DNA of 64,000 nt from Geosiphon pyriformis uo1. Taxonomy: Eukaryota > Fungi > Glomeromycota. Below, piece by piece: positions 4,468 through 48,437 of the stretch. Position 1 is the stretch's first letter; each line of letters begins with the position of its first letter. The DNA is taken from positions 144,293 through 208,292 of the forward strand of contig JAAOMT010000039.1 of the NCBI GenBank assembly GCA_016748015.1. The letters run 5' to 3'. The position numbers were made by a program, and so were the translations under genes. The notes below the pieces were generated by a model. The model was not told the DNA's origin and did no database searches. It was given only the letters and a program-made list of their open reading frames with translations.

Positions 4468-7400
4468 ACTCTTTCTTTTGTTGATCCTCCAATCACAAAG
4501 AGAGAAAAATGAAGCTGAAGAAATATCTTATTCTTTTTTTTCTTTCTTAAGCTATTTTTTTTAATATGTTTTTTTTGTAAAACTATACACAATGGGCATT
4601 CTTGTTACTAGTATAATTGAAGCGAAAGGTGAAAAGAGAATTTACTCTAAGCCAAAATAAAAATTCTTAAGTGTATTTTTGGTAAAACAGACAAGAAAAC
4701 CAGAAAGCTTGGTGTTGAAGCTTCAGTATTGGATTCTTCTACTGGTGGCTTAAACATAAAGGTAGTCGAATCTGGCAAAGCTTTTAAGCCTATGTCTTAG
4801 AGCAGTAAAGAGAACAGTTTTATAGTAGTATTAATAGAGAATCAAATATTAAGACATAAAGACGTGTTATATTAAAAGAACTACTTTTTTAAATAATAAA
4901 AAGATAAAGATTTCTAATACCTCAAATAACATGATATTATAGAACTTATATCAAGTTTTTTCTGTTGAAAATGTCTATTAAATAGCTAAACTTTAATATT
5001 AAAGTTGATAATATTATTTTTGGTCTCTTTCCTTTTTTGCCTAAAAAGAAACCTTTTTTTTAGTAGTTTTAAAAAAGAAAATCGAATTTAATTCAATAAA
5101 ATCTTATGGCTTAAACATTAGTCTGTCTGCAGTAAACAAGAAAAATTCTCAAGAAAAGTTAAAGCATATTAAAATTTTTTTTCACCAAGTAGATAATTTT
5201 AGAAAGATCTCTACTTTTCAAAATTCCAAAAGATTATTCAATTTACATTTACATCCAAATTAAGTCTAAACAAAGCTAAGAAATTGGCTGTAAAAAATAA
5301 CATTATTATTAATATTAATCTAAAACATATAAATATACATAAAAATTAAAAAATAATTATTAAAACAATTGTGAAATTAGTTAGATAATCAAGTTGCAGC
5401 TTATTAATTTGTGGTAAAAAGTTGTAATAAAATTTGCTGATTTTAAAATTGTTAAATTAATAGTTTATTTTGATTAAAAAAAATTTAGTGCATTTAACAA
5501 AAACTAATATTAACAAACAAATATAAATATCAAAAATCAACATTAAGTGTTTCTTTGTATTTTATTAATAAACACAATAACTTATAATTTTTTTAATATT
5601 TTGGCATTATATAATAAGAAAATATGTGTTATAAATTAGAATTTTGTGTTTTATAATTGTGTAAAATATATAATTATTTGTTTTAAAACCAATAAGTCTT
5701 TGATAAATGCTTTTTATATAGTTTGTGTTTTAAAAACATGAATTTGTGTTGAATTAATTTGGTTTTGTCTTTTTATATTAAATATAAACAAAGTGAACAT
5801 ATTATTATAAAATGTGATTTTATTGAGAAATATTCAGGTCAGATTAAGCCTATTAAGTAATAGCTAATGTATTTATATACTAAAAAACAGATTATTATTG
5901 TTTATTCTATTTTTTTTAAAAAATATAGAATTATGACTTGTTGATTTAAAATACAGTCTTATTGGTTCAAAAAACAAATAAATAAGTTGACAAAAAAATT
6001 AATATATATTTATATTAATAATTTTTTAGTTTTATCTTAAATATAAACTATTAATAACATTTTTTAAGCAGAATTAAAAGAGTGATATAATAATAAAAAA
6101 GAATTTAAGTGTGTTTATTAGCAATAAGACTGTTAATATCAAAAGTTTTTTGATTTTTAATATTAATGAAAATAAACAATTTTAATTTATTTTAAAGTTT
6201 AATAAATTACTATTTTAATAATTAACTTAATTTAGAAATTTACTATGTGTAATATATGAGTATAAACAATTTTAATTTATTTTAAAGTTTAATAAATTAT
6301 TATTTTAATAATTAACTTAATTTAGAAATTTACTATGTGTAATATATGAGTATAAACAATTTTCTTAAGCAAAAAACATAATAAAATAAAATAAAAATAT
6401 AAATAATTTAATTTTTATTGTTATTAAAACAAATTTAAAAATTAAATCAGATTTTGAATCATAAACAAATTTAATAAAATAAGAGTTTTTATTTTTGGTT
6501 TGAATTCTGGTTATTTGAATTTTGAATTTATAATTATTTTAAATAATAATTTAACAAAACATATCTGCAAAATTTTTAATGTGTTTAATTAATTTTTATC
6601 TGTTGTTATAAGTAATTGTATAATATAATAATTTATAATATAGTATTGTAAATTGATAATATAATCTGAAGGTTTTGGTATTTGAAGATTTTGGTTGATT
6701 GAATTTTTTATATAATAAACAAAAATTTATTAATAATAAGTAATTTTAAACAAGATAAATAATAATTTATATAATTGAATAGTGAATAATTATAGATAAT
6801 TTTATTAAAAAAAAATTGTTTTAATTGTTGAATTTTTAATTATTAAAGGTATTTAGTAAATATTTAATAAAAAAATTGCTTTTAATGCTTTTGTTATATA
6901 TATATAAATCTTTATAATACAAAATTTCTAAAATTTTTAATAATTTTTACACTTTTTTCAAGTTATTATTGGAATTTTTGAAATCTTTTTTGGTATTTTT
7001 AAAATTTCTGTTATTATGTTATTTACTGATTTTTAATATATAATTGGCTAATTTATGCTATATTTAATCATTAATTGTTTTTTTATATTACTTTATAAGT
7101 AATACTGTTTATTTACTGTTTAAAAATAGGCTTTTAATTGCTATTTTAAGTTTTTATACAGATATTTTTTTTGCAATTTAATTAAATTAAGGTTGTAACA
7201 TTAATATTATAACTATTAAAACAGTAAATAACTGTTTTTTTGTGGTTTTAAATAATAATTTTAACAAAAATAGCACTGAATAAAATGCTAACTTCAAAAA
7301 ATATTTGGATTTAAGCTTGATTAATTTTTTGATAAGAAAATTTATTATTAAAACTCTAACTTAAAAAAAATTTAAGAAAAATAAAAAAAGTTATTAATTA

Positions 7401-8816
7401 TAATTTTATTAATATATTATTTATAAATATTATAATCAAGCAAAAAATGCAAAGTATAAAATTTTTTTTAATACTTATTATAAAGCTATTTTTGTGTCAA
7501 TTAATTTAAATAGTTTTTTAAATATATAATTTATTGCTTTATAAAAACAAGTAAATAAAAACCGTTAAAATATAAAATTAAGAATATAAATAGCTTTAAG
7601 TAGAAACAGTTCAAAGTTTTTTTAAATAAATATAAATAATATAATAAATAAGTTTAAAAAACAAAAAAAATTTGAATAAAAAATAGACTTTTTTTAAAAG
7701 TTATATGTTTATTAATTAATAAAATTTTCTTTAAAGTTTGATTTATAAATTTGAAAAAAAACAGAAATAAAAGTTTTTTAAGTTCTTTAAATTAAAGCTT
7801 TTGGTGTTCAGAATTGCTAAAAAAATAAGATTAAAGTTTAATTATAAATTTAAAAGACTTTTATACATATAATATTTTTTAAAAGAGCAAATATTTTGTT
7901 AATTTAAAATATATAAATATAAATTCTGATATTAATAATATTAGTTTGATTTTGTTTAGTGTATAAAAATTTTATTAAGCTTTTAAGTTTTATAAATTCT
8001 AAATAATTAAAGAATTTAAAATTAAGTTTATTATTTTTAAGTACATAAAAAACTTTATTTGTAATAAAGAATTGTTTTACAATATTTATTTTAAAATATT
8101 GTCCTAAATTATTTAATTATTAAAAATAAGCTATTTTTAGAGCCTAAAAAAGTTAAATTTAAAATAAATAAGATAATAAAAAAATAAACTAAGAAACAAA
8201 TAATATTAAATAAAGTTTTTAATTTATAATACTGTTAGTATATTCTGTTAAATTATGTAAATAATAGGATGTTTTTAAAGTACTAAAAAGAATAAAATAC
8301 AAGTTGTTAAATGTAATCAAAATTTTGTTAAATAATAAGACTGCTAATTTGTTTGTTATTATAAATAAACTATAAAAACATTATAACAAATTTGTTTTAA
8401 GTTTTTTGTTAAATTTATTAAATATATATTTACTAAGTAAGTTAATTTTCAAATTATAAAAAAAGACTTGAAAATTAATAAAAAAAGTTTTAAAAAATAC
8501 TTAACTTATTATTTTAATTAAAACTATTAGAAAAATACTTTTTGATTAGATTTTTACATCTATATAAGAAGTTTTAAGTTTTTTATAGAAATAATTTTTG
8601 TTTTAAAAATACTTTAATTCAATCTTTTATTTAGTAATTAATATATTTTTTAATAATATAATTTAAATTAAAAATACTTAAATTATTATTTTATTTATTT
8701 AAATATTGTTAATAAGTTTTTAAAATTAATAATATTTTAATTAATAATAACAAAACAATAATTATTTTTATTAAACATATGATTAAATATTTTTTTAAAT
8801 ATTAATTAATTAATTA
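4468..8816 (+). mobile_element. Old, heavily C/G-erased LINE, 5' part (ORF1, endonuclease, most of RT)
   Basis: About 5095-5330 reads SIKSYGLNISLSAV...FTSKLSLNKAKKLAVKNNIIININLK, matching ORF1 SIRKLFALDINLSAV...SMEMATSLAKEKGIDINGNLK of the nested element; about 6215-6270 LIINLI*KFTMCNI matches LMSDLIWKIATCNV. Confidence 0.85.
6172..6363. repeat. 90-bp tandem duplication (2.1 units) at the ORF1/ORF2 junction of the old LINE
   Basis: 6172-6261 repeated at 6262-6351 with one C/T difference. Confidence 0.9.
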
Positions 8817-39139: not shown

Positions 39140-39215
39140 TGACAGAAATTATGCAACAAATCAATAATAGGGTAATACTAAGTATTGCTATATAACTCCT
39201 ATTATTTCCTGGCTT
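39140..39215 (-). ncRNA. Candidate omegaRNA scaffold / right end of Fanzor2 copy 1
   Basis: Immediately 3' of the ORF; first part (gttatatagcaat) is conserved in copy 2; 12-bp stem GUUAUAUAGCAA/UUGUUGCAUAAU with 11 pairs including G-U. Confidence 0.4.
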
Positions 39216-40394
39216 CATCAAACAATGCCCAGAGGAAATCCCCCCGAGCGCCATCTACCAGAATCCTACAATATTGGTAGTTGTACACTTTGGACCCTTG
39301 GATCCTTTGGATGTGTCACGCTAACCACAAGTCTTGGATATATAAGTTTCATTCTAAATAATAGCATGGACCTTAATTGCTAATCAGACTTTGTCGAAGC
39401 GATAATGCCCCAACAAAGCATTTTTTCATGTAATCTTTCTTGTCTTGCGATTCACCGTGTCCGACACTTTAGGAGGAATCACAATCGTATCAAATTCGCG
39501 AGAAAAGAGTCACTGAATTTTACGTCTTATCAAGTCTCCAGGCCATTTTATTCTTACCCTTTGAGGAGGATGCTAATAGCCTATCCTTTTTGCAGATGAG
39601 GCCCAGAAAAAAAATAAAGTAGAAGATGGAACCTGATAAAGAAAATGTATATCAAGATCTACATGCAACTTGCAACAGTATCTAGTTCTGTCTCATGCTA
39701 GCAGTGCCAAGTTGAGGCTCTTGAACAAAGATTGGTTGACAAAATTACATGAGGCATAAAGTTTAAACTCTGAGCCTTAAAATTGTCCTAATCATCCAAG
39801 TACTTGCAAATACGAACTATACGTTCAATAATATGTTCGTCAATCTTGCCTACACCCTTTTGTGCTAGGTAAAAGGTATGGACGCCGAGACAGTACTATC
39901 CACTTGGATTTCGCGGAGCTGTTTTTGCATCTCATATACCCAGAAAAACTTCCACTCACTCGTTTTGGGAGAGGTGAGCTTGCCATTTGACATTACTTGT
40001 GAGGAATAGGGTACCTATGATTATTCCTCCTTTTTTCAAAATGAAGTCACAGAGCACGCTTCGATATCGAAATGATAGAGTGTATTTGGAAGAACTTGTT
40101 GATTCGCGTTTGTCTCTTGTTGATTCATGTTTAACTTTTGCTAATTTACATTACGCCTAATTACTTCTTCCCTAGTAATCAATGCTTCATCGATGATATT
40201 GGCGGGCGCTTTGCTGTGCATACCCCGAAACACACAACAATTCGCATTAACTTGCGCTTAGCATTTTCGAGTTTCTCGTCTTCGTGTTTGCTAGCGTCTT
40301 TTTCTGCCCAAATATCTGTATAAAGCTTAAGTTTATCTTTGATGGATTGAGGCCTGCTGTGATGGACCGCTTTTTGTTCATTGTGATCACTCAA
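39140..40394 (-). pseudogene. Decayed Fanzor2/IS607-type TnpB, copy 1 (middle and C-terminus)
   Basis: Frameshifted pieces CFGVC, KYTLSFRYRS, EWKFFWVYE, LGVHTF..KGVGKIDEHIIERIVRICKYLDD/LICKKDRLL, FDTIVIPPKVSDTVNRKTRKI, NETYISKTCG, GSKVYN, GARGI. Confidence 0.85.
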
Positions 40395-41334: not shown

Positions 41335-42516
41335 ATGACTTGGAAAAATAATTCAATGGTCAAACAATCTACATTACTTAAGATTAACCATTTCTACTCT
41401 AAATTTCCACGAATTCTCACAACCATACTTTACTTAGTATATTTCTTGAGTTTATCAACAATTTCATGTTGGGCTTCCCCAATTGAGAAACGCGGTGTGG
41501 GGAGCGACGCCTCACAACAAAATAGCGATAATGGTATGTTTTTGATTTCCGTGATCATATGATTCTAAAAATCAAACTGAAATTTCTTCTCAATTATATT
41601 TTTATAACGCGTTACAGCCAGCAAAATTACGGTACATTCAACCATCCTTGGCATATTATTGATCGCGTTAGGGTTCGTCTATTGTTTCTTTGGAAGGAGA
41701 TTTTTTCGAGTGACAATTTTCATACTTGGGTTCTATATAGGCTGTAAGTATTTACCTACTGACTCGTAAAGTTGAAGTTACGTAGAGTTGAAATTTTCAC
41801 ATTTTAACCGTATGATTTGTAAAACTTTCAAAGCTATTATCGCTTGGGTAATATTAACAAACGCAGAACCTAGCAAAGGATATGGCAAAGGGGCAGCAAC
41901 TATACTCTTAGTGGTCTCCCTTGTGTTTGGGCTTCTTATTGGTCTTTTAGCCGTGTGTTGCGCAGATTTCGCTGTTTATATGTTGGGTGGGCTTGGTGGT
42001 ATGTATCCGAAGTTCAGAGAACCTTTGGCCGATTGAGATAATAAGAATACTTATATATATTCCTGAATTTAAGGTTACGTCCTTGCCATATTCATCCTAG
42101 CCTGGGGAAATGATGGAATAATTACATCAAAAGCCGGCAGAATTATCTTTATATTGGCCTTTATTATTGCTGGTGTGATCCTAACGATGTTATTTAAAAA
42201 TATTCTCATCATCCTTTCAACCTCTTTGATTGGTGCCTACAGTATCATTCTTGGCATTGATATATTTGCTCGGACAGGGTTCAAGGAATCAGTTCGTCAT
42301 TTTATGGATGGAAACCATGGCATTATTTATCATGCTAGTGGTAAAGTATATGGGCTGTTGGTAGCATTGTTGGTGCTCTTTATTGCAGGGAGTGTATTTC
42401 AATGGAGATATCATAGAGGTCATGATTTCGGATACCGGAATGAAGCACCTGCAACAAAGAATACAATTGGTAAAAAAAGAAATTGGAGGAATATGTTTAG
42501 CAGGAGAAGTGTGTAA
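41335..42516 (+). CDS. DUF4203/TMEM198(TM7S3)-like membrane protein (exons 41335-41533, 41618-41743, 41834-41998, 42074-42516)
   Basis: Signal-like segment ending ASPIEKR; G..YCFFGRRFFRVTIFILGF; IILSTSLIGAYSIILGIDIF; canonical introns; start codon uncertain (41335 or 41356). Confidence 0.85.
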
Positions 42517-42906
42517 ATCTTAGCCGCAGGGTAATAAGATAAATGCCCGAAAATCAATTCCCGCCATTTAATTACATTTAGTTTTTATATTCCCTTTTGA
42601 TTTTAAACCCTAACAATTATTTTGAATTATTTATTGTACTATTTAAGTTGACATTGGTGCTGACGAATTTTTTTCTTCTCGTTGAGAAGTATTAGTATAC
42701 AAATCTTGATACGTTGTAAAATTGCTACCTTGTAAAGAGAAAAATTAATAAAACCATTGTGTCGAGATTGAAAATAGCTCTTTAAACTAGCTTTAATTAA
42801 ATGAAAAGCATACTTGCAGTTGCTTAAAAAAGAAACTGAACACGAAAAAATCGAATTTCTCGCCAAGAGTAAAAAAGTATATTCGTTAAATCATTTTTAT
42901 CACTTT

Positions 42907-43481
42907 CAGTGTATTGTGACAGAAACCGATATTTAAAAACGAATTTCTCAAAGTAAATTACCAAACTAAGAGTAAAGATCCCTAGCCCTTTTTGGTACCG
43001 AATCGATTAACCTTTAACAAAAAACGATTTCAATGCTATTCCAGGCAATTTATAACTTTTCCCACGCATATCTACTTCATTCCATAAATGCTCGACTGGG
43101 TTTAAATTAGGAGACTGGAAAAGAATTATGAAACCATTTGGCGATCTTTTAATATATTTTCCAACAATACTTTTGCCCATCTGACCCGAATAACTGGTAC
43201 TTGCTTTCCTTTGACCAGGCTACTCTTCGATGTTTTTGTCCATAGTAGTGAGTCTAGACTTCAACGGCGGTGGAGCATTTCCGGATGATATTAGTCGGAC
43301 AGCATTCTGTGGGCGACAGCTTTTGGTTTCTCATTGAAGCTCCCCGTTTCTTTTTTATTTTTGCATATGTTTAGAGCCGAAACCAGGGCTACCTGCTTTG
43401 ATACAGCGGTTTCGTGGACCATGTATCCTTCTTTTCCCAGTGTAGATATATCGGGAGCGTTTTCTTGTAAAATCCGAGCAT
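42907..43481 (-). mobile_element. Internally deleted Tc1-family transposase relic
   Basis: ICKNKKETGSFNEKPK (HTH), VAWSKESKYQLFGSDGQKYCWK (first D region), QSPNLNPVEHLWNEV (E region), LIDSVPKR; CAGT start of a possible TIR at 42907. Confidence 0.85.
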
Positions 43482-43759
43482 TGAAATAAAAAGAATGTTG
43501 TGTGAGATGAAAAAATTTAACTATTTATATTTAGTGGAATCTTAAGGCGATAAAAATTTAAAAATCCTTATTTTAATAAAGGAAAAATATAAAAACTAAA
43601 TTATATGATATTTGTCATTTTAGCGAAAATATTTTATATGCTTTTGGCATACAATTCTTCAATGGCAAAATATTCGAATCTCGACATTTTTTCGTGTCTG
43701 TATTTTTATTTTAAAATTAACTCAATTCCATTTTCTAGGTTACGATGCTTTCGGATGGA

Positions 43760-44600
43760 TTGCTATATAACGCGTATTACTTCTTGCAGGACCAAGGCTC
43801 CATCTCCTGAGCGCCATTTTCATTTTTATCTATCACAATCCCACAATTCTGACAGTTTCACACTTTGAACCCTCGGACTCTTTGGATTTAGCCACACTGA
43901 CTAAAAGTCTTTGATGTGTTAGCTTCGCTCTGGATAATAGCACAAACCCCTGATAACTCGGCCTTTGCTGATCAAGCGTTGTCGAAAGTGAGAATGCACC
44001 CAAAAAAGCATTTTCTAATTTAATCTTTCTTGTCTTGCGATTTGCCATGTCCGACACTTTAGGAGGGATCACAATCGCGTCAAATTCGCGAGTAAAGAGT
44101 GACTGATTTTCACTTTGCAAACGTATAACTTTTCACCCCATCCGAAAAATCGCCTTATCAAGTCGCCAGGCCATTTCATTCTTATATTTTGAGGAGAATG
44201 CTAATAACTTAGCCTTTTTGCAAATGAATGGTGATAGGCTTTTAACAATTTATAGTACACATTGACGGGTTATGAAAATGAGTGATATAGAACGGTTTTA
44301 TGTGGATTGTTAAAAATCATATTGATAAACCTTGAAGTTTTTCGTCTTTACCCAAACATCTATGTAAGATCAGGTTTATCTTTGATGGATTGAGGCCTGT
44401 TGTGATCAAAATTTTTGGCGATGTCATTGAAATAATCCGATTAGCGATTTTTGACATGACCTAGTATTATAAGCAACCCAACCACCGCTCGAAGTGCTTC
44501 TTTGAAGATGGTTTTGATCACCTTGATTAATAATATACGGTTGAGAATATCTTTCATCTTCTGACGTTTGCGACGAGCTGTTGTCGCTTTTCTCTTGTGC
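43760..44600 (-). pseudogene. Decayed Fanzor2/IS607-type TnpB, copy 2 (N-terminal part and C-terminus; centre deleted)
   Basis: KKHFERWLGC, LDKAIFRM, FDAIVIPPKVSDMANRKTRKI, WVHSHFRQRLISK, IIQSEANTSKTFSQCG, NCQNCGIVIDKNENGA. Confidence 0.88.
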
Positions 44601-44872
44601 TATTCGCCTGTTCTAACGCTTTTCGCCGAAGAGAGCCACAATTTTTGCAGAGACCATACCGCGGCTTGTTCGTTACAATAGGGTCTTAAGTCCCAATCGT
44701 TTGAAATTGATACCTGACCCGATATCGCTGAGGAGTTTGCAGGTTGAAAATCGAGAAAGGGGGAGTTGCTTTTGTAACTTTTCTTGTTAGCATAGTTGGT
44801 GGTAATATCAGAAGTTAACTCAGTAAAGAGAGAGGTGGAATTTATTTTCACAATTTTGAGCCTGAGAAGCAC
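44560..44872 (-). pseudogene. tnpA: IS607-type serine recombinase (TnpA) remnant upstream of Fanzor2 copy 2
   Basis: Frame shifted by one from the listed ORF reads QEKLQKQLPLSRFSTCKLLSDIGSGINFKRLGLKTLL*RTSRGMV; DIGSG(I/L)NFKR.GL is the IS607 resolvase signature; catalytic RVSS not found. Confidence 0.8.
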
Positions 44873-45694
44873 TACTTAGCTATTAATTGGTATTTTTATT
44901 AATAGGTATTTTTAATCAATCTTTTCATTTTTAGAAGAATTCCAATTAAGTTTCAGTCCTCATGATGGAAAATAAAAGACAGATACACCAAATAGTGAGT
45001 TTTGTAAAAGTATAAATAATATACTAACAAACTTAACTTAAAAAATTAGCATAATAAAAGGTTTTCTTATAATGAAAATCTATAATAATGAAAAGACTTT
45101 GCTAAAAATGATAAGTTATTTCTTACTAATTTGGTTAATTATTTCTTTGAAATATTACAAATTCAAAAGAAAATTTATATATATTAGATCATTTATATAT
45201 ATTAGCTGGAAGAAATTGTAAGATATAGAAGATCAGTGAAACAATTTATACATGTAACTATGTTTTTAAAAATGAAAAAAAAATCTCACATGTAATTTGT
45301 AATATTGGCTGAAGCTGATTATTGACCATTGAGAAGTTTAACCCAGTTTTGGGAATATCAATGATCAGATGGTCCCTGCTCATTTAAGACACACACTGTA
45401 CGCCAAATTTCTCATTTAAAAAGTTTAGTTGTGGCATGTTTGCTGGAATCCCAATTAGATATCTTAAACTTCCATTCATTATATAACGGATAACTCATTA
45501 AATTTCTATTTTTAAAAACTTTATCGATTGATGTTAAAATGGTCTTCAAATACGGATTCGCAATTGGTATTTAAATTCTTAATATTCCTACTTGTTTTAA
45601 TCTTGAAAATAAAGAAAAATTTTCAAAATCTATTCGAACATTTTTTTCAATCACTTTTGTGATAATCTGATAAAAAGGGGAAAATGTTGGTTCG

Positions 45695-46375
45695 ATGTCA
45701 ATCACTTCAGCAAGGATTATGACGCCATTACACGTTCCTAACGTTATTAGCCTTTCAGTCACTAATTCTACAAGGTTTTTATTGATTGGCACGAAGCCCG
45801 GTAAGTGAATAAAATAACACCAAGTATATCAGATAAAATAATCTAAAATCATTAATAAAAAATTCTTTGAAGAAATCCTCGAATGGATTTACGACCACCC
45901 CACAATTTTAATTGAAACTTCTCTATTCGACAATCCAAACGAAGCGCCACATATTCCATTACCAGACATCATAATCGATCTTTTACCATGTTACGATTCT
46001 GATGCTCATGCAACACATCAAAAATCTTTTCTACAATCTCTAAATCCGCTTTCTCATCCTGATCCAGCCACTGAACCAGTTCGTTTAGAATTTCGTGCGG
46101 TTAATCAAACTTTAGATGAAGAGATAAATGAATGGTATTTCCGGATTGTAATTCAAAAGGGAAAGAATTTGGCAGAAGTTTTTCAACGAGTTAGTGAAGA
46201 ATGGTCAAAAGTTCAGTATCCTAGCCTATGGGATAATATCAAAAAAGTTGCCGGTGTTGGAGTGCAGGCTTATAATGAGGTTGAGGAACAGGTTGAGAAT
46301 TACAAGAAAGTTGAGGAACAGCATCATGGGAATGAAAGTGTGAGCTATGAAAATGAAAGTACAGAAGGAGACTGA
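45695..46375 (+). CDS. Hypothetical protein (exons 45695-45800, 45873-46375; about 202 aa, acidic tail)
   Basis: ATG, GTAAGT donor and GAAG acceptor give an open frame joining ORF 46169-46375. Confidence 0.65.
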
Positions 46376-48437
46376 AGTTGGCAAGAAAAGATGTAATTAA
46401 TTAACACGATTAAAACTTTGTTTTATTCTTGCTTGATATGTATTTTTCGATTCTGTCCTTTATTATGATGAATCGCATTTTGGTTTAAGACAATCATTGA
46501 ATATGGAGGATATGGTAGCTTTCGTATTGGTCATTTTGTTCAAATATAGTATGGGGAATTTTATTGGGTCTATATGATTACGAATTTGTATTTATATAGA
46601 TAAAACCTCTATATTAGTCAGACTTCTTATAGTCACCACTTTTTATATCCTCAAGGTCTGATTACAATGAGTTTAAACTGTAGTAGTAACAGTTTTAAAC
46701 AAGCAACTATCTTTGGCACTCTAAAGAAATCTTTGCTATTAACAATTCAATGCGTTCCTTTCAAGACGTCAACTTTTTAGGTGTGCCTTTCTTTTTTTTG
46801 GTTTCGATTTTTTTATTTAACATTCAAATCGTCTTCTTGAGGTCCTGGATTTTTTTATAAAAGCTTTATGGAGCATTTAATGTTTAACTTCCAAACTAAA
46901 AAATATACAGGTTTTTGGGAAAGTAATAATAGGCTATCATTAAACAAGTTCCTGAATTTTCGTCTTTCTGCTGGCAATTGAAATAATGAAATTACAAACA
47001 ATCATCATTATAACAGTGAACTTGAGAAACTTGGCAAATATTATATTAAAGAGAAAAAGATCCTTAAATAGAGGAATCTGTTAAAGGAAAGTATAGTTAT
47101 TTTTTTATTAAAACACTTGGTCAGTCATGACATCTGAATATACCGATTACCTTCCAGGGTTTGTCCTTGTAGTGAGAAATGATTTATCCTTGTTGGTAAG
47201 AACAAAGCTCAGCAGAATATCTTGGGGGTTTGTCCTTGTTTTGTGGTGTTTTATATACTAATGTTGAGCAGCTTAAAATAATTTAATATTCCACTTATTT
47301 TTACAAATTTCCTTATTTCAAATGAAAATACACTTGCTTTTTGATTTTCTAAACAATATCAATGAGTTTCCCTATTTTATTTAGGCTAAAAACTGATTTG
47401 GTTGTTAAGTGTAAAAGTTCTAGCACTTTTTTGAAAGCTTGTTTCTTTTTTATCAAATTATTTCGACCTTAAAAAAATTAAATATCTTGGGTGTATTTTA
47501 CTAATCTCAAGGCTACAATTAAAATTCAAGATTTGGTTCCAAATTACACAGACGGATAACTTTATTATTGAAAACAAAAGTCTATCAATAGATCGCAGAA
47601 CCCTTTCTTTTTATAATTTCTTTGACACGTTTTAGCATCGAGTCAAGAAAATTGAACAAATGTTTTTAATCTATCCAATAAATCCTGCTCTTCCAAGTCA
47701 GCTTCTGTTTGTGGCTTTCGGTTTTTTTTGATGAATTCAATTTTTAATTTCTCTGAGATTTTCGACATTCAGAACGTTTATCAATAATAGATTTTCATTT
47801 CTTTTAGTTCTAATCGTTTAAGACAATTTTTAAAGCAAGTAATGAACCTTCCAATAATTCCGTACTCTTTCTTGGGCATTTTTACCGTATAACATTCGTT
47901 TTAAGTAAGATCTTTTTGGCTACTAATTTTTGTATACATTTCAAAAATTCAAGTCGTTCTTTAACTAAACAATATATATTAAAAAAAAGATGAATGTCTT
48001 GTTATTAAAAGTAACAAGACAGATCCAATCTAAAAGTTGTTAGTATTACTAAATCTTTGAAATTCGTCTTGAGATCTTTTTACCCGTCTGTACATGTGCC
48101 TAGATATGCAAAACGTTCGAAGCGGAAAAAGTTTTAAAATGAGTATTTTGGACATCTTTGTGGGATGCTAATATGATAAATAATCTTATGATTGAGTGCA
48201 AAGCCATTTAAGAATTGCGAATTGGGGCTTTGAATTCGTGGTTTGTCAATTTTGTTTTATTGTTAATTCAATTTAGTGAATTTCGAGACTTTCATTTTTT
48301 AAACGTTTCTGGAAAAAACAGGATGAATGAAAGAGCAAATTCAGAACAAAATTCAATTTGGAAAGAAATTCTAGTTCTCACAAAGACAAAGATGAAAATG
48401 TTAAATTCTCAGTTCACTATTATTAATTCAAAAATCA

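Follow-up and report, generated by a model that had tools for sequence, protein, structure and literature searches.

Introduction

IS607-type transposons that carry a Fanzor2 nuclease are known from eukaryotes and giant viruses (Bao and Jurka 2013, PMC3627910), one example being ISvMimi of Acanthamoeba polyphaga mimivirus. The nucleases known as pro-Fanzors and Fanzors are recognised by the 'DPG and Ealt' signatures (Yoon et al., PMC10711439). No link between a Glomeromycotina fungus and Fanzor was found in the literature searched. Here we examine a 64,000-nucleotide stretch of the genome of Geosiphon pyriformis (contig JAAOMT010000039.1, positions 144,293 to 208,292 of the forward strand), hereafter the window. 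Positions 43752-44942 of the window, minus strand, very probably hold a decayed nuclear copy of a eukaryotic IS607-type DNA transposon, now a pseudogene with internal deletions. The copy holds remnants of tnpA, which encodes the serine recombinase of IS607, and of a gene for a Fanzor2/TnpB nuclease.

Results

Identity of the relic

An earlier note, made from the letters of the window, had proposed IS607 TnpA and a TnpB/Fanzor2 nuclease on the basis of seven peptides. All seven were recovered exactly on the minus strand at the places given:

44729-44676, minus strand: SDIGSG peptide, whose D codon starts at 44726, followed by a stop at 44675-44673
44502-44473, minus strand: KKHFERWLGC
44084-44061, minus strand: FDAIVIPP
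44042-44022, minus strand: NRKTRKI
44002-43964, minus strand: WVHSHFRQRLISK
43938-43891, minus strand: IIQSEANTSKTFSQCG
43857-43810, minus strand: NCQNCGIVIDKNENGA

Since the peptides occupy three different frames with stops between them, the gene is frameshifted. A six-frame Pfam search of the genome matched PF07282 to 43807-43980 with 3 stops inside the match (E 4.2e-8; 40.3 bits against a cut-off of 26.3 bits). The intact nuclease of L052, a complete relative from a metagenome, was matched by tblastn at 44225-43807, where its residues 479-626 are spread over three frames (E 1.3e-27). With a further tblastn match for TnpA (E 2.6e-14), the homology is far beyond chance. Among the stop-free pieces of the window searched alone, only the two zinc-ribbon pieces scored against PF07282 (E 3.8e-4 and 0.16); the 37-residue TnpA piece gave no Pfam match.

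The recombinase was identified through other copies in the same genome. The TnpA block of the window (44775-44635) shares 80-86% DNA identity with copies L030 and L024, and translations of these two match NF033518, transpos_IS607 (E 1.8e-13 and 1.9e-9, respectively). Pfam Resolvase was matched at three other copies that have DNA in common with this block. A protein annotated at L030 is 100% identical to NCBI G9A89_016616 of Geosiphon pyriformis, so that the Glomeromycotina-like host suggested by the earlier note is Geosiphon pyriformis.

Intact relatives and the anatomy of the element

The TnpA piece of L030 led to a set of recombinases of 248-269 residues in metagenomes, and their contigs hold complete elements. 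L052 has tnpA at 6001-6777 and a nuclease gene ending at 8113. L053, also complete, is 79-82% identical to L052; L054, L055/L056 and L057/L058 are more distant complete elements. Scans of viral and prokaryotic genome collections with single proteins found no close relatives, and profile scans of these collections found distant ones only. In all of L052-L058, tnpA precedes the nuclease gene on one strand. The TnpA of L052 has a MerR-type helix-turn-helix (HTH) and a Resolvase domain, and is closest to recombinase structures of the IS607 family.

The original ends were defined by aligning L052:5890-8157 with L053, because homology between the two spans exactly this interval of 2,268 bp. The left end starts GAA(A/T)TTTTTGCTTAGTAATAC and the right end finishes CAATCCATCCG. 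Terminal repeats are limited to subterminal direct and inverted repeats of 10-12 nt, and there are no long terminal inverted repeats. No target-site duplication was found at the boundaries of L052, L053 or the window copy, few ends having been compared. Studied IS607 elements integrate by crossover at a matching dinucleotide, GG. No single crossover dinucleotide fits the three junction pairs compared here (L052, L053 and the window).

The nuclease gene of L053 contains an 86-nt GT..AG intron with a CTAAT branch-like site (L053:1357-1442, read by eye). Because removal of the intron restores the frame, the host of L053 is a eukaryote. Some of the intact relatives look like giant-virus contigs. 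L055 (GCA_040384025.1, JAWVHG010002864.1) has an intact nuclease ORF (open reading frame) of 596 residues and an overlapping tnpA with an early stop. Its neighbours, genes for Evr1/Alr, polysaccharide lyase 14 and an NADPH-oxidase-like protein, are densely packed.

Active site, structure and phylogeny

The intact relatives were compared in an alignment (A1) whose invariant columns are D263-P264-G265 (the DPG of RuvC-I), P358 (a proline at the canonical RuvC-II glutamate), E409 (the glutamate in EAYTS.TC), the four cysteines of the zinc ribbon, and R442-D443 (the RD of RuvC-III). Among them are the DPG and Ealt signatures by which Yoon et al. (PMC10711439) recognise pro-Fanzors and Fanzors. The window copy retains IPP and SEANTSKT, and its DPG segment is deleted; other Geosiphon copies retain SIDPG. 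The rearranged active site read from the window by the earlier note, with proline in the canonical position and a glutamate ahead of the zinc finger, is thus matched by invariant columns in A1, and the reported change of DRD to DKN is real in this copy.

The closest solved relative by sequence is the mimivirus Fanzor2 9b0l (E 3.9e-11 for a piece from Geosiphon, 2.9e-25 for L052). In a phmmer search of PDB, 9b0l scored 92 bits and all others 39 bits or less. An AlphaFold model of the L052 nuclease has core pLDDT values of 80-95. Foldseek placed this model nearest 9b0l (E 3e-23), followed by TnpB/Cas12f (~1e-14) and the Fanzor1 SpuFz1 (7e-6). Profile, tblastn, sequence and fold comparisons agree on IS607 TnpA and a Fanzor2/TnpB nuclease.

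In a maximum-likelihood tree the Geosiphon pieces group with L052 (support 100/99), and that group joins two metagenomic proteins (100/100). A split with 99/99 support sets the clade of metagenome/assembly and Geosiphon sequences apart from bacterial and phage-like ones. Because the Geosiphon rows are partial, their exact position is approximate.

The relic and its decay

About 1.19 kb of the original 2.27 kb is left at 43752-44942. The earlier note had placed an element here, as found, within slightly narrower limits; the ends are 43752 on the right and ~44942 on the left. Family homology among the Geosiphon copies breaks off at 43759-43802 and at 44904-44924. The surviving parts, all on the minus strand, are as follows:

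44826..44942, minus strand: left-end (LE) remnant, starting GAATTC at 44942, by local alignment to L052:5887-6000
44637..44774, minus strand: fragment of TnpA (IS607 serine recombinase), residues 91-136 of L052 TnpA (tblastn, 74% identity, E 2.6e-14)
44522..44773, minus strand: N-terminal extension of the Fanzor frame, in the +1 frame over the tnpA remnant (tblastn, L052 Fanzor-frame ORF residues 39-184, E 3.4e-12)
44473..44551, minus strand: start of the Fanzor/TnpB core, WED strand and first helix; LNRILLIK, a frameshift, then KKHFERWLGC
44227..44292, minus strand: REC-domain fragment FYITHFHNPSM with a stop inside (tblastn, L052 Fanzor residues 350-371, 59% identity, E 3e-5)
44225..44227, minus strand: junction of a private deletion of ~316 bp; Fanzor residues ~373-478 are gone, the RuvC-I DPG motif included
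44022..44225, minus strand: RuvC-II region with FDAIVIPP, proline at the canonical glutamate position (tblastn, L052 residues 479-551, 52% identity)
43807..44014, minus strand: bridge helix, alternative glutamate (QSEANTSKT), zinc ribbon and RuvC-III (six-frame PF07282 match; tblastn)
43752..43806, minus strand: right-end (RE) remnant, ending CAATCCATCCG at 43752, aligned with the right ends of L052, L053, L030 and L035

Both termini are kept, the right end as ATCCATCCG at 43760-43752 and the left end as GAATTC at 44942. The flanks, ttg/GAATT and CCG/aaa, show no duplication. The LE remnant has a single decayed copy of the subterminal GCTTAGTAAT-type repeat at 44880-44861 (repeats of this type are seen in the LE of L052), and the RE remnant has an internal deletion of ~30 nt. 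The TnpA fragment is interrupted by the in-frame stop at 44675-44673, and the HTH, the catalytic serine and most of the C-terminal half are deleted. The extension match at 44522..44773 lies in another frame than the TnpA match. The core start corresponds to DNA block B, which is 76-82% identical to other copies, and it fits the YPN..Q..L..W.G..R motif of A1. The zinc ribbon and RuvC-III region is spread over two frames with three stops, and the first cysteine has become phenylalanine.

At the deletion junction the tblastn match leaps from Fanzor residue 371 to residue 479. DNA blocks D and E abut in the window only; L015, L027, L031, L034 and L035 have 269-318 bp between them. Besides the ~316 bp that removed RuvC-I, the window copy lacks, relative to other Geosiphon copies, ~180 bp behind the TnpA block, ~200 bp of the REC region and ~220 bp from the N-terminus of TnpA. 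Since these deletions are private to the window copy, it was inserted at full length and decayed in place. The copy is dead, as had been proposed: it has stops, frameshifts and at least three private deletions, which took RuvC-I, the TnpA HTH and the catalytic serine.

Copies of the family in the Geosiphon genome

A DNA search of the genome for further copies found 85 matching pieces on many contigs at 68-86% identity. A protein piece from one copy gave at least 150 matches, and the L052 nuclease gave 658 candidates, 105 of them matches at E<=1e-10. PF07282 was matched at 68 sites in the six-frame search. The copies are dispersed as solo units of ~2 kb. The order TnpA then Fanzor on the same strand is found in the window (44774-44637, then 44551-43807) and in L015, L031, L017, L020, L024, L025 and L030.

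Every long match among those scored has several stops, and no intact copy was found among the scored matches. Past activity in this lineage, as the earlier note supposed, is borne out by the more than 100 dispersed copies. Its suggestion that intact relatives might exist elsewhere in the genome is not; among the copies scored there were none, and intact ones lie only on contigs of other organisms. After a large burst of transposition, the family looks to have become completely extinct.

A second decayed copy of the family lies in the window at 39211-40363 on the same (minus) strand, ~3.5 kb from the first; its matches to nuclease residues 280-637 switch between several frames and are broken by stops and deletions. 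Elsewhere (L001/L051; G000:C701:384000-391000, minus strand) there is a Fanzor gene in better condition that has no tnpA. It has one in-frame stop and two intron-like stretches, with mariner-like remnants upstream, and its DPG, IPP, SEAYTSKTC and DRD motifs are all intact. The tree places it inside the broad clade of metagenome/assembly and Geosiphon sequences and outside the family of the window copy.

Genomic context and alternative explanations

Host genes flank the relic on both sides: a TM7S3/TM198-like gene at 42073-42664, and a second gene starting near 45487. DNA contigs from sequencing run X1 cover 42000-44725 and 44706-46500, joining the relic to both of these spliced fungal genes. 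X1 is probably the source sample of the assembly. To the extent that contigs from such a sample can tell, they exclude the contaminant or chimera that the earlier note had named as a ground for refutation. The gene at 45487-46500 (plus strand) is transcribed, with GT..AG introns at 45566-45676 and 45800-45871; its 177-residue open stretch has no Pfam match.

A second run, X2, is labelled DNA and behaves as RNA, with GT..AG joints in the flanking gene and adapter tails. Its depth is 3-9 on the relic versus 185-446 on the neighbouring genes. One low-depth X2 contig (44290-44521, minus strand) joins 44395 to 44521 and skips 44396-44520, a segment whose minus-strand ends read GT..AG, as if a faint transcript of the dead element were spliced at cryptic sites. 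Transcription of the relic is faint and probably meaningless.

Just beyond the right end of the relic, and outside the IS607 family, is a probable Tc1/mariner transposase remnant at 43007-43450 (minus strand; PNLNPVEHLW, weak DDE_3 match, E 0.05). Within it, at 43066/43067, X1 and X2 contigs carry 36 letters more than the window, either an assembly difference or an allelic indel.

Three other origins for the relic were considered. One, which we regard as very improbable, is that the copies came within integrated DNA of giant viruses (nucleocytoplasmic large DNA viruses, NCLDV) and that the window holds a fragment of such an insertion, not an autonomous transposon copy. Relatives do occur on contigs of giant-virus metagenome-assembled genomes (MAGs) and on dense virus-like scaffolds, and Fanzor2 is enriched in giant viruses (PMC10530073). 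However, the window copy has both LE and RE and stands alone between two host genes, the family is dispersed as solo units of transposon length, and no viral genes were seen adjoining the relic. A virus as the original vector of the family is possible.

To our knowledge Geosiphon is the only Glomeromycotina fungus with a cyanobacterial endosymbiont. Bacterial DNA, from the Nostoc endosymbiont or another contaminant, might have been mis-assembled or very recently transferred. Many cyanobacteria are among the nearest prokaryotic relatives of this TnpB clade, the best plasmid match to TnpA is a Nostocales plasmid (40% identity), and the published 'pro-Fanzors' are cyanobacterial (PMC10711439). 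We nevertheless give this explanation hardly any credence. Single DNA contigs link the relic to flanking spliced fungal genes, and more than 100 decayed copies with mutual identities of only 68-86% lie on many contigs. The prokaryotic relatives (many cyanobacteria, Chloroflexota, Synergistota and Ca. Uabimicrobium) are ~30-50% identical; L052 is far closer, and L053, which is close to L052, has the GT..AG intron. The bacterial clade is separate on the tree (99/99). Nostoc is absent from the 80 best prokaryotic loci; with the low bacterial identity, this leaves a recent transfer from the endosymbiont unsupported.

The last is that the relic was a nuclease of Fanzor1 type borne by the Tc1/mariner-like element next to it and not by an IS607 element. 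This draws on the position of that remnant on the same strand just past the relic, on the mariner-like remnants near the TnpA-less Fanzor copy on C701 and on the known carriage of Fanzor1 by mariners (PMC3627910), but is scarcely credible. The mariner remnant lies past position 43752, where the relic ends on the right, and in dozens of copies it is never part of the family homology, which ends at 43759-43802. A TnpA_IS607 fragment lies upstream on the same strand here and in many copies, and both sequence and fold are nearest Fanzor2.

Several observations weigh against the IS607/Fanzor2 assignment of the window copy. The TnpA evidence in the window amounts to 46 residues, which alone have no Pfam match. 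RuvC-I, the HTH and the catalytic serine are absent from the window, so that the full architecture rests on paralogous copies and on relatives in other organisms. The tree was built without the named Fanzor2 reference sets of published surveys. X1 may be the source sample of the assembly, in which case its linkage is not independent. At the right end, the z-score of the guide-RNA fold is only -2.07 with weak covariation, and an Rfam search of L053 gave no match. L052 and L053 have almost the same sequence at the right end (1 difference in 47 nt), and by analogy the right-end remnant would be the expected place of the 3' end of a guide RNA.

The nuclease frame is open across tnpA

Taking tnpA as reference, L052, L053, L054, L055 and L057 have the nuclease in the +1 frame. 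This frame is open from an ATG 121-181 nt past the tnpA ATG, giving an overlap of ~600-630 nt in the four of these elements with an intact tnpA. For the eukaryote-like copies in general the distance between the two ATGs is 112-181 nt. Between the nuclease ATG of L052 and the start of the conserved core there is no other in-frame ATG. In a set of 160 loci taken from prokaryotic and viral scans, nearly all of those with both genes intact have the frame open across most of tnpA.

A shuffle test was carried out on 55 non-redundant elements. Synonymous codons were shuffled from tnpA codon 61 to the end while the TnpA protein and codon usage were kept, and stops were counted in the two other frames:

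+1 frame (nuclease frame): 6 stops observed, 218 expected
+2 frame: 466 stops observed, 546 expected

Six IS607 elements served as controls (H. pylori, C. fetus, L. salivarius, C. botulinum, T. thermophilus and M. intracellulare). Their observed stops equal expectation, and tnpA and tnpB overlap by only 10-184 nt. Since stops are depleted in the clade and not in the six controls, the open frame is specific to the pro-Fanzor/Fanzor2 clade and kept by selection. The overlap across tnpA goes unmentioned in the key papers searched (PMC3627910, PMC10711439, PMC10530073, PMC11061315 and PMC9956272); one paper states that IS607 ORFs may partly overlap, and nothing further.

The two start codons are closely spaced outside the eukaryote-like copies as well. 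At giant-virus MAG loci the tnpA ATG comes first, with the nuclease ATG 4-10 nt further on; at three other viral-contig loci the nuclease ATG precedes it by 5-8 nt. Position -3 is A at the nuclease ATG and a pyrimidine at the called tnpA ATG in four to five of the eukaryote-like elements, L057 having an ambiguous tnpA start. The eukaryote-like elements have 0-2 ATGs between the two starts. With closely spaced ATGs, the first in weak and the second in strong context in the eukaryote-like copies, both proteins could come from one capped mRNA by leaky scanning, and the spacing in eukaryote-like and giant-virus-like copies fits this. Leaky scanning was also considered as the origin of the overlap, an idea weakened by the open frame in bacterial relatives; since bacteria share that frame, leaky scanning would be a later use only.

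Eukaryote-like elements have a Lys/Arg-rich segment resembling a nuclear localization signal (NLS) right before the nuclease core, within the overlap with a lengthened TnpA tail; this stretch is absent in bacterial relatives. The extension (residues 1-175) is mostly of low confidence in the structure model, with confident islands at residues ~71-85 and 111-120. The motifs PYWN, LWLP..TD and SWF of the extension were considered as independent evidence and rejected, since conserved TnpA motifs produce them when read in the +1 frame.

L052 and L053 have diverged to different extents in the overlap and in the rest of the element:

Overlap: 11%
Nuclease-only part, with the intron region, which aligns poorly: 27%
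Third codon positions of tnpA within the overlap: 16.5%
Third codon positions of the nuclease gene beyond the overlap: 39.5%

Upstream of the nuclease ATG, the initial 157 nt of tnpA (L052:6001-6157) have only 3 differences from L053, evenly over codon positions. Such near-identity suggests extra constraint, for example from recombinase binding sites, a 5' leader or a stretch kept free of ATGs.

A Nostocales plasmid carries a copy of the clade (L224; Trichormus variabilis plasmid NZ_CP047243.1, 96894-102418). Its tnpA is unannotated and has an in-frame stop, the nuclease frame is open across it, and the record annotates a 403-residue TnpB only.

We consider the case evenly balanced for a broader proposal, that throughout the DPG/alternative-Glu clade of bacteria, giant viruses and eukaryotes the nuclease ORF is extended by ~150-220 codons over tnpA and kept by selection, that leaky scanning makes use of it, and that it was a pre-adaptation, which would account for the colonisation of eukaryotes by this narrow TnpB lineage alone. 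We infer that the overlapping long form is translated.

Discussion

Judged from its relatives, the intact element would be ~2.27 kb long, with two genes on one strand and short subterminal repeats. From what is known of IS607, its tnpA product, a serine recombinase with a MerR-type HTH ahead of the catalytic domain, would excise the element and integrate it as double-stranded DNA. By analogy with the TnpB and Fanzor enzymes studied, a guide RNA from the right end would direct the nuclease to the sites it cuts, which would help the element persist. The family grew to at least ~100 copies, with several hundred fragments, and then died. The window copy was inserted at full length between the two host genes, later losing ~1.1 kb by private deletions and gaining stops and frameshifts. 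Apart from its faint transcription it has no function now.

In itself the locus is unremarkable, a dead copy of an element of known type. With it, the hosts of IS607/Fanzor2 come to include a Glomeromycotina fungus, and it argues against a recent transfer from Nostoc. Its wider value is the statistical evidence for dual coding of the Fanzor2/pro-Fanzor frame over the transposase gene, unlike in other IS607 elements. Should the long form be translated, Fanzor2 and pro-Fanzor proteins as annotated would often lack their true N-terminus, and the NLS-like segment would be part of the overlap. Translation would then also offer a testable explanation of how it came about that only one TnpB lineage succeeded in eukaryotes.

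Comparison with known systems

The family most resembles the IS607-Fanzor2 elements of eukaryotes and giant viruses. In both, tnpA lies upstream of a TnpB-like nuclease gene on one strand, and long terminal inverted repeats and target-site duplications are missing. They also share the derived active site, with the alternative glutamate before the zinc ribbon and DRD in RuvC-III. Unlike these elements, the Geosiphon family is extinct among the copies scored. The mimivirus Fanzor2 (9b0l) is the best sequence and fold match of the intact relative, but sequence identity is only ~19%, and the canonical glutamate position is proline in the Geosiphon family and glycine in 9b0l.

The cyanobacterial pro-Fanzor TnpBs of IS607 elements (Yoon et al. 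2023, PMC10711439) have DPG and the alternative glutamate, an IS607 TnpA as partner and, as found here, a TnpB frame open across tnpA. They differ in being ~30-50% identical and in forming a separate clade on the tree. Their TnpA has 190-215 residues, in contrast to 246-270 here, and the Lys/Arg-rich stretch ahead of the nuclease core is missing.

Classical bacterial IS607 elements (IS607 of H. pylori, ISCfe1, and the Thermus and Clostridium elements) share the transposase family and the gene order. Their nucleases have the canonical RuvC-II glutamate arrangement, however, and their tnpA and tnpB overlap by only 10-184 nt, with stops in the tnpB frame equal to the shuffle expectation. Fanzor1, represented by SpuFz1 of Spizellomyces punctatus (8gkh), is likewise a fungal RNA-guided nuclease derived from TnpB and has the same rearranged catalytic glutamate. 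It rides in DDE, Helitron and other eukaryotic transposons and not in IS607, and its fold is further from that of the L052 nuclease (Foldseek E 7e-6 versus 3e-23 for the mimivirus Fanzor2).

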